Below, piece by piece: positions 19,852-25,941 of a stretch of 64,000 bases of DNA (position 1 is its first letter; every line of letters begins with the position of its first letter). A program made the position numbers and the translations under genes. The notes below the pieces were generated by a model. That model was not told where the DNA came from and did no database searches. It saw nothing but the letters and a program-made list of their open reading frames with translations. This stretch comes from Hyaloraphidium curvatum SAG 235-1. Taxonomy: Eukaryota; Fungi; Monoblepharomycota. Where the stretch lies: assembly GCA_025558095.1 (NCBI GenBank), contig JAIVFI010000039.1, positions 310,001 through 374,000 on the forward strand, written 5' to 3'.

Positions 19852-21447
19852 ATGGCAGACACCGAGGCCGGGCCCGAATCCTCCCCTGCGGGCGACGCCG
19901 CCACCTTCAGTGCGGCGGAATGGCTCGCTTTGCTTCCGGCCGCGGCACCTCGTGGGCGTCCGCAGCCGTGGGAGCGCCGCCGCGCGTCGCCGGACCCGCC
20001 CCGTGCCGCGGCCGCGCGCCGTGCAGACCCTTTGACGGAGACGCGGCTGCTCGCACTGCTCGCCCCCTCACCGGCACTGCGGCGATGGGTCGCCGTGCAG
20101 CTCGCGCTGCAGAGGGCGACGGGGCGCTTCTGGACCGCGCACTGGATTGCAAGCGTGCTGTTCCGCGTCGCGGTGTTCATGGCCATCCCGCTGGCTGCCG
20201 ACGTCGTCGCCCGGGGCATCTTTTCGCAGCGGCATCTGGTCACCGCCTTGGTGGCACAGACGTTTGTCTCCTTGGCATACGTCGTGGCGAACGTTCGCAG
20301 CGGTTTGCTTCAGCAGCGACTCGCGGAGGAGCTTAATCGAGATGGGGGCGACGAAGGCAAGGGCGAGGACGGCAGCGAAATGAGCAGCGGAGCGTCGTCG
20401 GACGAGGACGCAGTGTTGGACCGCACGGACTACGCGTTGGTGGCGAGATGGCTGCAGGCGTGCTCGTCTGAGGCGCCGGGCATGCTCGTTGCCCACTGCT
20501 CTTCCGATCCTTTCTGTCCCTGTGCACGCCAATTGTGCCTGGGGCACGTCCCAGGTAGAGCTTTCACGGTCTGGGCTATGCAAGGCTTCCTCACCGCGGC
20601 TGTGATCGCCCTTGCGTTTTCTTTTTTCGAAGCCTACACGCAATACGTCACGCTTGCGTGGTTCACATGGACGCACACCTGGAGCGCCGTGCTCGCGGCC
20701 CTGTGCCTCTTTGCGACGTCGACCTTTGCTTTGATATCTGGGTTCTCTCATCCATGGTCTAAGAGCTTCCCTGTGCTCACGCTCGAGGGGCGCCTTCAGC
20801 GTCGCGCCGTCAGCATCGCCCTTGGTACCCTCGTTTCTGATTTCCAAGGCGCAGCCGCGGAACCGGACGGCGCCCTCGCCGCCGCGGTATCCTCCGATGC
20901 CCCTCGCTTCAAATCGGACTCATCACTAGACTCTGTTGTCTACCGAGCCCTCACTCCCGTCCTTTCCTCCCGTTTCGCCGCCTTCCGTCTGGGCCGCACC
21001 ACCCGTTTCGTCTGGATCGTGCTGGACCTCATCACAATGCTCATCTACCTCGTGGGCTCCTCATGCATCCCGGCCTACATACTCACCTGGCTCCTTTACA
21101 ATGTGCTCTATCTGCTGTGGGATCTCTCGCTCGTCGCCGTCGCCAACTCGGACGCCGCGGCGATCGGCGCCGCCTACCTATCCGCGCGCAACGAGCTGCG
21201 CCGGCTCCTGGTCGTCGTCCCGCCGCGCCACGAGGCGCTCCGTGCCGCCCTGCAGGACCGGGAGCGCGCGCTGGATGCCGTGCTCGCCGAGACGGCGGCC
21301 TTTGGCGCCGCGTTCGCAGGCGTCAGGGTGACCCCCGGCGTGGTGAGGACGGTCGGGGCGACCCTGTGCACGGTCGCGATCGGCGTGTACGGGTTGATGC
21401 GCGGGAGCGGGGTGTCGGTGGAGCTCGGGAGCATATGCTCGGGCTAG
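19852..21447 (+). CDS. 7-TM membrane protein, candidate gustatory-receptor-like (7TMIC) family; paralog of 24280-25941
   Basis: 531-aa single-exon ORF with about seven hydrophobic segments. Shares EWLAL, PLTE, CPC...C, G..CIP and the C-terminal pattern with its paralog. Confidence 0.75.
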   Translation: MADTEAGPESSPAGDAATFSAAEWLALLPAAAPRGRPQPWERRRASPDPPRAAAARRADPLTETRLLALLAPSPALRRWVAVQLALQRATGRFWTAHWIASVLFRVAVFMAIPLAADVVARGIFSQRHLVTALVAQTFVSLAYVVANVRSGLLQQRLAEELNRDGGDEGKGEDGSEMSSGASSDEDAVLDRTDYALVARWLQACSSEAPGMLVAHCSSDPFCPCARQLCLGHVPGRAFTVWAMQGFLTAAVIALAFSFFEAYTQYVTLAWFTWTHTWSAVLAALCLFATSTFALISGFSHPWSKSFPVLTLEGRLQRRAVSIALGTLVSDFQGAAAEPDGALAAAVSSDAPRFKSDSSLDSVVYRALTPVLSSRFAAFRLGRTTRFVWIVLDLITMLIYLVGSSCIPAYILTWLLYNVLYLLWDLSLVAVANSDAAAIGAAYLSARNELRRLLVVVPPRHEALRAALQDRERALDAVLAETAAFGAAFAGVRVTPGVVRTVGATLCTVAIGVYGLMRGSGVSVELGSICSG

Positions 21448-21579
21448 GTTGGGGTTCAGGGCTTCGGTGTTCACTGTATCTCTGTTTCAGAGGCAGTTTA
21501 CTGCCTTATTACACTAAACTATAACGTACGTAACTTTGACTCGATAGAACGGAACGTACTGATAAACGCAAACGTTTCT

Positions 21580-23569
21580 CTAATCCGCCTTCCGCTTCCT
21601 CTTGCCGGTCACAGCCGTGGTCGCAGGCGTGGTCGCAGCCTCGTTTGCGGCCTTGTTCGAAGCCCCGTTGGTAACTGCGGTCGCAGCCCCGGTCGCGGCC
21701 CTCTTGCCCAACCCTCCGACGCAGAACGAGTTGGCCGTGAAGATGCCGTCGGGATCCACGCGGTTCTTGATCGAAAGGACCCGGTCGTAGAGCTCCTTCG
21801 ACTCGTAGTAGTTCTGCCACACGTTGCTCATGTCGTACTCGGTGTCGGGGCCGTCGGTGTTCTGCGTGTTGCTGAACGAGGCCCTGGAGGTCGTCGCGGA
21901 GTCAGACACGGTCGAAAGGAGGCTAAGACCCGCAGCCCACGGACCATAGGATGCGGCGGTCCTGCTCGCCCATCGGTTTGCCCTTGCCGATCATCTTCTC
22001 GCCGAGCCGGAGCTTGTACTCGTGGGCCCACTGCTTGGCCCTGGGCGTCTCCTTGTAGAAGGCCATGGTGCCGAAGAGGAGGGTGGAGTCGCGCCAGCTG
22101 AACGAGGTGCGCCCGTCCGCTGCGTTGAGCTTGAACTTGCTGTATTTGCCGCCGTGGAGCTGCAGCTGCCCGCCGATCTGGATGTCGGCGCGCATCATAC
22201 CCTCGTCCAGGTGGTCGGCGAGCGTTTTCGCGAAGCCGTTCTTGGAGAGCGAGGTGGAGGCGGTCGCCCAGCAGCGCTTGACGTAGGGGAGGTTGAATTC
22301 GCGCTCGATCTTCATCTCCAGGTGGCGGTAGTCCTTGGACATCGGCCTGTGCGTCTTCTCGTCCAAGTCAACGTGCACCCTGGTGGGCAGTCGAGGTCAG
22401 CTTGATCGGGACAGCGGAGACAATCGGCTGCGTTGTGCCGCACCAGTGAGAAGGGTGGGTCCACTTCCCCTTCGCCGTCACGGCGCGGAACTTGTCAAAG
22501 ATTGCCTGCTGCTTGGGGCCAAACTTTTCCTCCTTGTTCAGGTTGGCCCAGACAACGGATACCATCAAGCCATTGGGCCAGAAGGTCAACTCCTCCTTGA
22601 GAAACTCCGGTTCGCCCTCGGTGTACTCGTTCGCGTGCTCACGTCGCATTTTGGCGTCCTTCGATTCGTGGAAGTGGAAAAGATCCACGTGCGATTTGAT
22701 GTTGGCGTACATGTTGCCCGAGACGATGGTGGCCAGGATGTCCCAGTCCGCAGCGAGATCGTCGTCGTCGCTGAGCTCGCAAATGAGCTGGCAGTACTCC
22801 TGGAACACCTCCTCGGAGTAGAAGGACATGAGCTTCATAACGCGCGAGTCCGGGTAGTCCTCGTCCTTGAGCGGGGTCAGGGTGATGCTCGTGATCACGC
22901 CCAAGTTGCCGGGAGAGCCGCCGAGCACGGCAAAGAAGAGGTCCTTCTCTTCCTGGTCCGTCGCCGTGCGGCGCGCGGTGTGCACCTCGCCGTCGGCGAG
23001 CACGATGTCGAACTCGGTGACGTAGTCGGAGGTGAGCCCGAACGCCCGTACGATGGCGCTGTAGCCGCCCGTCTGGATGTGGCCGCCGAGGTGGACCCGA
23101 TGGCACTCCCCGTGAGGCAGGAACAAGCCGTCTTCTTCGAATATTTTGTTCATCTCGCCGACGTTGATGCCGGGGCCGCACTTGAAGATGTTCTTCTCTT
23201 TGTCGTACGAGTTGAACTTCCACGATTTACCGGAGAGGTCGATCTGGATGTTGTCGCCGTTGGTGCTCGATGCCCCTAGGTATTGGTGGCCGCCTGGCGA
23301 CCAAGCACATGAGTGAGCAACACGTCGCGGCACGGCAAGGACTCCTACTCACCCGTCCTAACTGCGATGGCGATGCCCTTTGCCGCGGCATACTTCACCG
23401 CGGCCTTGACGTCTTCCACGTCTTCCACGTAGATGATGGCGGCCGGGTCCAGCTTCCCCTCCGGTTGACTTGTGTAGCAATACTGGTAGCGGGACGGGTC
23501 GAAAACCTTATCGCCGCGGTGCACGACCCGGCCTTTGAACGACGGAAGGTCGGTGAGAACGGGTGGCAT
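21580..23569 (-). CDS. FAD-linked oxidase, berberine-bridge-enzyme/VAO family (3 introns)
   Basis: PAAIIY..DVEDV, RTG|GHQY (FAD-linked His), GECHRVHLGGHIQTGGY (FAD-linked Cys), DLFFAVLGGSPGNLGVIT and the BBE tail IKNRVDPDGIF. No signal peptide. Confidence 0.9.
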
Positions 23570-23611
23570 CTTGCGCTATCGGGCGGGAGACGGGGGAGGC
23601 AATGTCTGAAG

Positions 23612-23900
23612 CGTCAAACAGAGCCTCGCGGCTATGGTACCTGCGGAGCGCGGCGGACGGTTATTCCGGAACGCCGCACGATGCGGGCAATGCGGCGGAG
23701 ACTCACAGCGTGGAGGCTCGATCCGTTGCGGGCGGGCAGTTGCGGGGAGCTGTCAAACAGCCTCGGGCGGCGGCCACCTGCAGAGCGCGGCGGGCGGTTA
23801 TCAGGGGCGCCGCACAGTGCGACTATGCGGCGGAGACTCACAGCGCTGGAGTCGACTGCCGGTGCGGGCGGTGCTGCGGGATGCTGCGGCCAGCACGGGG
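23612..23900 (+). repeat. Imperfect tandem duplication, unit about 137 bp, two copies
   Basis: acctgcggagcgcggcggacggttat...atgcggcggagactcacagcg at 23639-23710 recurs at 23776-23845, and the flanks also align (gtcaaacag..cctcg). Confidence 0.8.
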
Positions 23901-24279
23901 GCCGTCACCCGCTCATCCTGGCTGGAATTCCATGTGGAAAACAGGAAAAACCTGTTCGGTGGCAACGGGAACAGGAGGTAAAGAACTCCCCAAAATGACA
24001 TTCTATGATCGTGCGAAGAACATTTCATCGATTTTCCGCTGTCCCGGAATCCGCTCTCGCGCCGCCCGTGCGACACCGGGGACGTACTTTACCCCAGCAC
24101 ATTAAGCCCAAGTGCTCGGATGCTGCATGTGAGGTATCTCCGAATCCAAGACCTGAGCAAAGCCACGGCGGTTGCGGGGTCAAAATCGCTCCCGTGTGGA
24201 GACAGGATGACGATCGCCGCGGGCGAACAGGTCCCACCGCGGCCGCGGCCACGGGGAGGCGCTTGCGGTTTCCCGACGC

Positions 24280-25941
24280 TTAGGCGGGCACCGAGCACAC
24301 GGTCGACACCTGGAAGGTGATCCCCAGCCCGCGGAAGATGGTGTACAGGCCGACGCCGATGGTGAAAAGGGTGACAGCCGCCGTCCTCACCGCCGAAAAG
24401 TCAACAAGGAAACCCTGCGGGGATCGCGGAAGGTCAGGCGAGGAACTTCCGGCTCAGAATGCCACGGCAGCCCACCATCCACTTGCCCCGGACGTCCTCG
24501 CCCACGAACGCGGTGATGAGGTCCGCGTGGCGCCGCGCCGAGGGAGTGCCGATGCTGAGCAGCTCCACCACGGTGGACGCGTAGAGCTTCCGGATCTGTT
24601 CGATACTCGAGTTCCAGAGGGCGAGCAGGGCCAGGTCCCGCAGCAAGACCAAGGTGAATTCGGTGAAGAAGACGGGGATCCAGACCGGGATGCACTGCCC
24701 GCCGATGAGGTACATTATGGCCGAGCCGATGAGCTGAGCAAGGACCGTCGCGAACAGGGTGCGCCCGTGGGAGCTCCGTGCGAGGAACACGCGCCAGGTA
24801 CGCGAAAGCTCCTTGTGCAGCAGGGCGTACGGCTCGTCGCTCAGGTCATTCGTGGGGACCGCCTCTCTGTCCTCGACGTCGCGCTCACGGTGCAAGAGGT
24901 CGCGCAGGACAAGAATCACGGCACGGCTCCGCAGCCGCTTCGCAAGGTCCATCGGGGGATGCCCAGCAATGCTCGTCGGGTAGGGTGTGGAGATTTCCTG
25001 GAACATGAGGGTGAAGTAGAACAGAGTGACGAAGAAAATGGCCCAAGGCGAAGTGTAGGTCACCGGAGCCCACGCCACAATGACTGTCCAGTGGACGAGC
25101 GTATTTCCGATTGTCTCTGCCAATAGGCATCCCGTGCCGGTAATGAGTGCCTCGCGAGCTGCATTGTTAGGAGCGTCGCCGGCACACGATTTGCGGGGGC
25201 ACGGACAAAGGTCGTCCCTGTCGTCGTGAAGAGTGAGAGCGGAGGGACCGTCCTCAACGAGCTGGGTATATCGGGCAACGCCCGCGTAGGGGTGGGCCGA
25301 GAAGTCGCCTTCCTTGGACGTGTTGTGCATTTCTGGGCGGCAATCGAGGTGAGCGGCGGACGCGGGGCGCCAAACCCCGGCAGCCCACCTGCCAGGCCCT
25401 TCTCAGCAACCTTGTCGCGCACGCCGACGACGACGAGCCCCAGAGTGAGGACGAGAATCGCCGCGGTAGCGAACCCGAGCTGCTTCGTGGGATAGGGGTT
25501 TTCCACCCTGTCGTTCAGCACCCACAGCGCGACGAGCAAGAGAATTGAGGCCACGTTGATGCTAGCGTTGATCACGCTGAAGAGGCGCGATAGCCGTTGG
25601 ATGAAGAGGGAGTAGCCCAGGGCGCCCGCGGCCACGTGGTACGGCGCCAGGCCCGCGCGAAACGCGGCCTCGGTGAGGGGCTCGGCGGCCCGCAGCTCGG
25701 CCGCGCGGTCGACCGTCGCGGACGGCAGGAGGATGGTGTACGGGATGCTCGGCTCGTCCGGGAACAGGGCGAGCCACTCGCGGTCGGTGAAGTTGCGGCC
25801 GCCCTCGCGCGGGCCGGCCGCCGAGAAGGTCAGCGTCGGCAGCGTCGGGAAGGGGCTGCTCTCGGCGAGCGACGCCTCGGACGCCACGGACGCCATCGAG
25901 TCGCCGCGCGAGATCATCTGGATCACGTTCTCCCTCCTCAT
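24280..25941 (-). CDS. 7-TM membrane protein, paralog of 19852-21447 (2 introns)
   Basis: NFTDREWLALFP, AEPLTEAAF, LCPCPRKSC, GGQCIPVWIP, then GKWM|GFLVDFSAVRTAAVTLFTIGVGLYTIFRGLG after removing two GTGGGC..CAG introns. Confidence 0.75.

Follow-up and report, generated by a model that had tools for sequence, protein, structure and literature searches.

Two neighbouring genes in the fungus Hyaloraphidium curvatum, here called A and B, raise the question of whether a fungus holds membrane channels built like the insect odorant and gustatory receptors (ORs and GRs). The genes lie in a 64,000-nucleotide window, the whole stretch of DNA that was analysed, and are separated by 2.8 kb with an unrelated FAD oxidase gene in between. 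A sequence-only reading had taken them for a paralogous pair, possibly from a lineage-specific, duplicated family of ligand-gated chemosensory channels. Both are real, expressed genes. Positions 20090-21219 of gene A are spanned by a colinear transcript contig (run X1), and in gene B both introns are spliced out, exactly, in transcript contigs of the same run, giving three exons that sum to 1545 nt with the frame kept. The features referred to below are as follows.

19852-21447, plus strand: gene A, an uninterrupted ORF with an intronless coding sequence of 531 aa plus stop
20494-20538, plus strand: gene A H215-x6-C222-P-C224-x4-C229, in the TM2-TM3 loop, predicted cytoplasmic
21055-21072, plus strand: gene A GSSCIP turn including C405, at the TM5/TM6 junction, predicted outer loop 3
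21232-21444, plus strand: gene A TM7a (461-484), linker of GFxVD-type consensus, TM7b (495-518) and C-terminal tail with C529, from the AlphaFold2 helix list
25941 (ATG) to 24280-24282 (stop TAA), minus strand: gene B, three exons, 514 codons
25389-25941, minus strand: gene B exon 1, N-terminal region, TM1 and TM2; family profile positions 12-146, E 2e-22; RNA contig
25333-25388, minus strand: gene B intron 1, 56 nt, GTGGGC...AG; RNA joint 25332>25389 skips 56
24476-25332, minus strand: gene B exon 2, TM3 to TM7a; profile positions 162-435, E 3e-60; RNA contig
25184-25228, minus strand: gene B Cys/His loop, within exon 2
24415-24475, minus strand: gene B intron 2, 61 nt, GTGGGC...AG; RNA joint 24413>24475 skips 61
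24280-24414, minus strand: gene B exon 3, end of the TM7a-7b linker, TM7b, C-terminal Cys and stop; profile positions 468-508, E 2e-17; RNA contig

Every sequence feature that the earlier reading had listed for the two genes is present in both. The N-terminus is hydrophilic, and hydropathy gives seven hydrophobic segments where about seven had been counted. The loop after TM2 carries the CPCxxxxC motif (C222, C224 and C229 in gene A), the GxxCIP turn between TM5 and TM6 reads GSSCIP in A and GGQCIP in B, and the long helix described after TM6 bears a near-invariant Asn (N432 in A, 98% of 120 family members). The strings reported before the last TM (AAFAGVRVT and GKWMGFLVD) are likewise found; that of gene B straddles intron 2, so the splicing adopted from the letters alone was correct. 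These features are far from chance (see the residue conservation below). The two do belong to one family, as the term paralogous pair implied, but at about 29% identity they are simply two of hundreds of members and are neighbours by happenstance.

A genome-wide count of paralogues, which the sequence-only reading had called for, gave 257 occurrences in the H. curvatum genome of a 33-base DNA pattern for DxxCPCxxxxC (the His lies outside this pattern) versus 4 for the control. The family profile, which recovers gene A with an E value of 4e-158, matches 459 protein clusters at E <= 1e-3 and 292 at E <= 1e-30. From among the best 150 matches of the larger search we inspected a sample of 20; 19 were H. 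curvatum proteins, deposited in GenBank as 'hypothetical proteins', and the remainder consisted of metagenome fragments. We scored 84 loci from 880 first-look candidates, all with E <= 1e-105 and spread over 35 contigs, and in 78 of these the ORF is open over its full length, with in-frame stops in the other six. Altogether, we estimate a family of about 250-450 genes with a median pairwise identity of 26%, which is known only from H. curvatum and from one or more uncultured relatives. It is lineage-specific, as had been proposed, but far from a duplicated pair.

Conservation across this divergent set is concentrated in a few places. H215, C224 and C229 are identical in 120 of 120 members and C222, C405 and N432 are conserved in 98-99% (C405 in 99%); the His/Cys motif is also invariant or nearly so in a separately compared set of 31 members. 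From this conservation and the predicted topology, the TM2-TM3 loop would hold a cytoplasmic His/Cys3 knuckle that most likely binds zinc, and C405 in the TM5-TM6 turn and C529 in the C-terminal tail may form a disulfide at the outer face. By entropy, TM7b with the linker and tail is the most conserved part of the protein (1.7-1.9 bits) versus 3.0-3.2 bits for TM1-TM5, the most variable. One face of the TM7b helix in gene A is made up of T500, T504, T507, G511 and S514, with an Arg at either end. The motif G-F-x-V-D, which had been named as a hallmark of insect GRs and ORs or of plant DUF3537 proteins, is the consensus of the TM7a-TM7b linker in the Hyaloraphidium family, and we found no literature source for it as a hallmark of the others. 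We also compared variability across the helices and found no enrichment in the outer helix halves of the kind seen around insect ligand pockets; in TM1, TM2, TM4 and TM5 the inner halves are the more variable.

Insect odorant and gustatory receptors, GRLs, plant DUF3537 proteins and PHTF are grouped in the 7TMIC superfamily, for which we used the membership criteria of Benton et al. 2020 (PMC7746228) and of Benton and Himmel 2023. Pfam models (7tm_6, 7tm_7, Trehalose_recp, DUF3537 and others) gave no match for A or for the gene B exons, gene B being compared exon by exon as three separate exons and not as a joined protein, and Pfam returned nothing for 31 members even at E 10, the PHTF N-terminal domain PF12129 included. 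The DUF3537 and 7tm_7 models run against the H. curvatum genome retrieved nothing, and a profile search of PDB sequences yielded chance matches only (E > 0.1). An exact look-up of protein A returned no record, in a collection from which records of H. curvatum's own genome were possibly excluded, and neither A nor the family alignment retrieved a match in a word-index search of proteins. That blank is uninformative because the same collection contains paralogues; the 8000 candidates of the search may have been filled by unrelated proteins with a similarly biased composition. The published TM7 signature, (T/S)Yhhhhh(Q/K/E)(F/L/M), is described as diagnostic but not definitive (PMC7746228); among 120 members no more than two of the four positions fit, namely T507 (96%) and, at 515, a hydrophobic residue, with V/L at 508 where Tyr is expected and S/G/T at 514 where Q/K/E is expected. 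The family thus has no detectable sequence relatives; if it belongs to the 7TMIC superfamily, as the models described below suggest, it would be a highly divergent branch.

The AlphaFold2 model of gene A, built without templates, has a pLDDT of 87.9 and a pTM of 0.87. Its helices comprise TM1 (94-120), TM2 (126-166), TM3 (233-259), TM4 (276-299) and the continuous TM5 (359-403, 45 aa) and TM6 (408-455, 48 aa), joined by a short strand (405-407) at the GSSCIP turn, whereas TM7 is split into 7a (461-484) and 7b (495-518) by a 10-residue linker. A replicate model was made for P0114, which of the full-length proteins compared stands closest to gene B (42% identity to exon 2). It shows the same helix layout, with TM7a at 403-417 and TM7b at 431-454; in both models TM4 is followed by a short break and then a 31-aa helix. 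Across 120 members, each protein carries on average 31.9 Lys and Arg residues in the N-terminus and IL1-IL3 versus 1.2 in EL1-EL3 and the C-terminus, and the positive-inside rule therefore predicts an intracellular N-terminus and an extracellular C-terminus. The mean loop lengths are 71, 76 and 64 aa for IL1, IL2 and IL3 and 5.5, 16 and 4 aa for EL1, EL2 and EL3. In Foldseek searches with model A and with the replicate, the best 8 of 48,161 chains were all GRs or ORs both times, and their in-order alignments covered 300-350 residues, in contrast to at most 218 residues in unrelated matches of model A and 127 in the first unrelated match of the replicate. The predicted topology of seven TM helices with the N-terminus on the inside, together with this clear match of structures, withstands the refuting check that the earlier reading had set itself. 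In the ESM Atlas, model A matched unnamed cnidarian and echinoderm clusters (395-419 aa, TM-score 0.66-0.67 by target), a PHTF cluster (TM-score 0.50 by query) and a Gr64e-like cluster. Language-model sequence-feature neighbours of two paralogues, which we treat as leads only, included DUF3537 (0.90-0.91) and 7tm_7/GUR clusters (0.85-0.86). These models make it very probable that the family has the 7TMIC fold.

Could the resemblance be convergent or a modelling artefact of an unrelated seven-helix family, so that no function can be transferred? We consider this improbable, even though the family has no sequence similarity with any 7TMIC, helical bundles call for caution in structure searches and both models were built on paralogue alignments from one genome. 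Two models from disjoint alignments led to the same outcome, the OR/GR chains came out on top twice with longer alignments than the unrelated matches given above, and the unusual hallmarks recur together (the divided TM7, the extended TM5 and TM6 helices, the small outer loops and the inside N-terminus). The training cut-off of AlphaFold2 precedes the release of the Orco structure 6c70 (2018-08-22) and no templates were used, so the fold does not reproduce a memorised structure. A fungal family with seven TM helices and a large, lineage-specific expansion would also suit fungal-type GPCRs, akin to the Pth11-like receptors that have expanded in filamentous fungi, but the charge bias places the N-terminus inside, opposite to GPCRs, neither model has a GPCR in its 50 best structural matches and Pfam GPCR matches are absent, which makes this explanation extremely unlikely. 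The idea that these are decaying or repeat-borne ORFs without a cellular function, to which the high copy number and the in-frame stops would lend themselves, is just as hard to sustain against the fully open frames in most of the best loci, residues that are invariant across members only 26% identical, and transcription of both A and B with correct splicing of the latter.

Compared with the insect ORs and GRs, including Orco (7tm_6/7tm_7; PDB 6c70, 7lic, 8v02, 8jm9 and 8vc1), the Hyaloraphidium family shares the seven TM helices and inside N-terminus predicted by the models, the short outer loops, the long TM5 and TM6, a TM7 divided into 7a and 7b with 7b as the most conserved segment, and a large, highly divergent and partly tandem gene repertoire. 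Unlike them, it resides in a fungus, lacks sequence similarity, departs from the TM7 motif, adds a structured N-terminal stretch of roughly 90 aa, bears the His/Cys3 motif in a TM2-TM3 loop of about 70-85 aa and has a conserved outer-face Cys pair and Arg at both ends of TM7b, and its variability is not focused on the outer helix halves.

By analogy with the insect channels, four subunits would assemble through a cytoplasmic anchor domain formed by the long TM4-TM6 extensions and TM7a, the strongly conserved TM7b would line a central pore, and the highly variable TM1-TM5 bundle would set the gating stimulus individually for each paralogue; the repertoire could therefore sense many external or metabolic chemicals, as we propose. 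A four-copy complex prediction for residues 285-531 of gene A, in which the alignment was unused, gave a score of 0.00 and bears neither way on assembly. On this analogy we lean towards A and B being expressed members of a divergent 7TMIC family that works by such a channel and chemosensory mechanism, while the narrower proposal of a ligand-gated channel used for sensing is quite plausible but falls somewhat short of an even chance. H. curvatum is a non-swimming unicell, and classical chemotaxis is for that reason not an obvious use.

The most serious competitor, though still rather unlikely in our view, keeps the 7TMIC fold and drops the ligand-gated chemosensory channel: the proteins would have a PHTF-like role; they might, for instance, work inside internal membranes, be constitutive channels or transporters, or serve as Cys/His-loop scaffolds, and would have expanded for another end, for example to vary the cell surface or to tell self from non-self. 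A lengthened TM2-TM3 loop is also a feature of PHTF-like class-B 7TMICs (Himmel, Moi and Benton 2023, bioRxiv 10.1101/2023.08.30.555482), PHTF is among the ESM Atlas fold matches and the pattern of variability departs from that of the insect ligand pocket; moreover, the biological role of PHTF is described as unclear (PMC9998090), and even in insect Grs the demonstration of channel function is no trivial matter (2023 7TMIC review). However, PHTF is a single, highly conserved gene in each genome (PMC9998090), in contrast to hundreds of divergent Hyaloraphidium paralogues; these have no PHTF N-terminal domain, and their most conserved element, TM7b, is the pore helix of the insect channels. Compared by description (bioRxiv 10.1101/2023.08.30.555482), the Hyaloraphidium IL1 of about 70-85 aa is also far shorter than that of PHTF and bears a Cys/His motif unique to the family. 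The sequence-only interpretation is, overall, partly supported.

Returning to the channel reading, it is tempting to speculate that a unicellular, non-swimming fungus independently built a chemoreceptor-sized set (about 300-450 genes) of insect-type 7TM ion channels with a zinc- or redox-sensitive cytoplasmic Cys/His module in the TM2-TM3 loop that is absent from any described 7TMIC, a tentative proposal that we hold to be possible. If it is true, animals were not alone in massively diversifying the 7TMIC channel fold for sensing, and H. curvatum would offer a microbial system for studying the gating of insect-type channels. Hundreds of intact, divergent copies in a fungus, at least two of them (A and B) expressed, revise the picture of where this fold diversified, supply structure-function studies with a compact set of natural variants, most of them free of introns, and raise the question of what a non-motile planktonic fungus senses with such receptors. 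Two additions to the fold, the conserved Cys/His loop and the pair of outer Cys residues, lend themselves to testing. In the literature searched, we found neither a link between Hyaloraphidium and the 7TMIC superfamily nor a published report of a 7TMIC repertoire this large outside animals.

In the literature consulted, non-animal 7TMICs are described as single genes or small families with no demonstrated function there; for unicellular GRLs, one gene is known in each of two Spizellomyces chytrids and six each in Thecamonas and Vitrella (PMC7746228). The chytrid SpunGRL1 and SpalGRL1 (PMC7746228) resemble the Hyaloraphidium proteins as fungal, chytrid-grade 7TMIC candidates proposed on topology and predicted structure, of a similar length class and with a partial TM7-motif match only. 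They are set apart, by description, as single genes found through similarity to animal GRLs, whereas the Hyaloraphidium family numbers hundreds and lacks such similarity. Plant DUF3537 (PF12056) is likewise a non-animal 7TMIC candidate and a recurrent feature neighbour, but its Pfam model is blank here, plants have 4-12 copies, and its long loop is IL3 instead of IL1 (PMC7746228).

Genes A and B, the two window genes for candidate seven-helix channel proteins resembling insect odorant and gustatory receptors, share about 29% identity and are members of a very large family. Scanned in six frames, the entire window yielded these two members and no third. Between them lies an oxidase gene unrelated to both:

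19852-21447, plus strand: gene A, a single open reading frame of 531 aa.
25941 (ATG) to 24282-24280 (TAA), minus strand: gene B, three exons and two short introns.
25333-25388, minus strand: gene B intron 1, 56 nt, starting with GTGGGC (25388-25383) and ending with AG.
24415-24475, minus strand: gene B intron 2, 61 nt, starting with GTGGGC (24475-24470) and ending with AG.
21580-23569, minus strand: FAD-binding, berberine-bridge-type oxidase gene (FAD_binding_4 and BBE domains).

After intron removal the exons of gene B (553 + 857 + 135 = 1545 nt) are in frame and, when translated and searched one by one, they match successive stretches of the family profile (12-146, 162-435 and 468-508; E 2e-22, 3e-60 and 2e-17). 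Contigs of run X1, which map to the window, end in Illumina adapter sequence and show GT..AG joints, indicating that X1 is a transcript assembly. One X1 contig skips precisely 25333-25388 and 24415-24475, which confirmed both gene B introns, and a separate contig is colinear with gene A over 20090-21219; these contigs report transcription, without expression levels. A low-depth plus-strand GT..AG joint at 21669-21724 (54 nt skipped), 3' of the gene A stop, could mark an intron in the gene A 3' UTR; this stretch also overlaps the oxidase gene, at its 3' end, on the opposite strand. Three introns of the oxidase gene are supported by X1 joints (21882>21944, 22378>22443 and 23292>23352), and nothing was found that links it functionally to the receptor genes. 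A single 3553-nt X1 contig (21724-25684, minus strand) passes through gene B and the downstream oxidase gene, with two additional spliced joints between them (23638>23705 and 23774>23839); it could reflect read-through, UTRs that overlap and contain introns, or two transcripts merged in assembly.

Sequence searches gave no named relatives. Pfam returned no match for gene A or the gene B exons and nothing recurrent among 31 family members at E ≤ 10, searching every PDB sequence by profile yielded chance matches only, and the DUF3537 and 7tm_7 models had no match in the H. curvatum genome. The gene A protein was modeled with AlphaFold2 without templates from an alignment of A and 30 paralogues (pLDDT 87.9, pTM 0.87). 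In a Foldseek search of the PDB the top eight matches were all insect gustatory or odorant receptors, albeit weak ones (E 0.03-0.2, TM 0.2-0.4). Matches in the ESM Atlas were two sets of clusters without names, cnidarian (TM 0.67 by target) and echinoderm (0.66 by target), a chlorophyte membrane protein, PHTF1/2 (TM 0.50 by query) and a cluster resembling Gr64e.

Across 120 aligned family representatives, each protein carries on average 31.9 Lys and Arg residues in the N-terminus and the TM2-3, TM4-5 and TM6-7 loops versus 1.2 in the remaining loops and C-terminus, which places the N-terminus inside. Mean loop lengths are 64-76 aa on the inner side and 4-16 aa on the outer side. In the gene A model, TM5 and TM6 are helices of 45 and 48 residues, and TM7 consists of two separate helices, 7a (461-484) and 7b (495-518). 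Topology, loop lengths, long TM5/TM6 and a split TM7 are the criteria for admission to the 7TMIC superfamily, which includes insect receptors, GRLs, DUF3537 proteins and PHTF (PMC7746228; 2023 7TMIC review). The family lacks the TM7 motif from the literature, (T/S)Yhhhhh(Q/K/E)(F/L/M), of which the Thr and the final hydrophobic position alone fit; the motif's authors regard it as diagnostic but not definitive, and an accepted chytrid GRL retains one of its four positions (PMC7746228). For G-F-x-V-D, which the sequence-only reading took as an insect hallmark, we found no source; it is the consensus of the family's own TM7a-7b linker (G490 95%, V493 75%; gene A numbering throughout).

Entropy is lowest (1.7-1.9 bits) in the TM7a-TM7b linker, TM7b and C-terminal tail, and highest (3.0-3.2 bits) in TM1-TM5. 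H215, C224 and C229 are invariant (120/120); C222, C405, N432, R318, T507, G490, C529, D219, R499, R314 and G520 are conserved in at least 90% of members, followed by R517 (88%) and W277 and W371 (86-88%). The conserved T500, T504, T507, G511 and S514 of TM7b share one helix face, as their 4-3-4-3 spacing indicates, and R499 and R517 bracket this helix, one at each end. By analogy with the insect channels of known structure, the protein would form a tetramer held together by cytoplasmic extensions of TM4-6 and TM7a, with TM7b lining the pore. Such an arrangement would fit a TM7b that is strongly conserved and has a face of small and polar residues, in a protein otherwise variable. However, TM1, 2, 4 and 5 are more variable in their inner than in their outer halves, which speaks against a straightforward insect-like model.

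The family adds two new features to the fold, an H-x6-C-x-C-x4-C cluster and a predicted outer cysteine pair, C405/C529. The cluster sits in the predicted cytoplasmic TM2-3 loop and, in that reducing compartment, most plausibly binds zinc. C405 (TM5-6 turn) and C529 (tail) both face outward in the predicted topology. Short strands are predicted at both sites in the gene A model (405-407 with 522-524) and in a replicate model of P0114, the closest full-length relative of gene B among the proteins examined, built from a disjoint alignment (353-355 with 458-460), suggesting a disulfide-stapled mini-sheet.

With gene A as query, the 31.9-Mb genome gave 90 matches, and the family profile gave at least 84 scored loci (all E ≤ 1e-105) out of 880 first-look candidates. 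These 84 are spread over 35 contigs with a few tandem pairs, and the reading frame is open along the full length in 78 of the best 84. The genome contains 257 instances of the DNA pattern for DxxCPCxxxxC versus 4 of a reversed control. Among 1.84 billion cluster representatives, the family profile matched 459 at E ≤ 1e-3 (410 at ≤ 1e-10, 292 at ≤ 1e-30), and 19 of 20 sampled clusters were from H. curvatum. We estimate the family at 250-450 genes in this organism, with a median pairwise identity of 26% among the 120 representatives. Dense clusters occur on C1 (704-732 kb), C5 (784-817 kb) and C12 (711-732 kb). Two loci with identical 33-nt motif sequences, 4 kb apart on opposite strands (C10:808992-809024, plus; C10:813173-813205, minus), suggest a recent inverted duplication.

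Two Spizellomyces chytrids have a single candidate GRL each according to Benton et al. (2020, PMC7746228), who also reported small families in other lineages. Himmel et al. (2023, bioRxiv 10.1101/2023.08.30.555482) described class-A and class-B 7TMICs, the latter PHTF-like with a long IL1 (intracellular loop 1), and their 'Fungi' comprised Chytridiomycota and Blastocladiomycota only. In the literature searched we found no paper treating Hyaloraphidium together with 7TMIC receptors, and the best database matches are GenBank 'hypothetical proteins' of H. curvatum. The genome had been called fungus-like, rightly, as H. curvatum is an early-branching fungus of the Monoblepharomycota, inside the chytrid clade. 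It is a planktonic unicell that is not known to bear a flagellum.

The remaining one of the 20 sampled clusters is the sole evidence so far for the family beyond H. curvatum. This member (L033:3-1205) adjoins an SNF2-like gene on a 2895-bp contig of JGI metagenome 3300043314. The G+C content of the contig (54% versus 65% in the H. curvatum sequence here) and the 50-54% identity of the protein to its closest H. curvatum paralogue indicate that at least one other, uncultured organism has the family. A 2024 soil metagenome run (X3) contains short contigs that match parts of window 20948-21255 and 23900-24134 with 95% identity or more, which suggests the presence in soil of H. curvatum or a very close relative.
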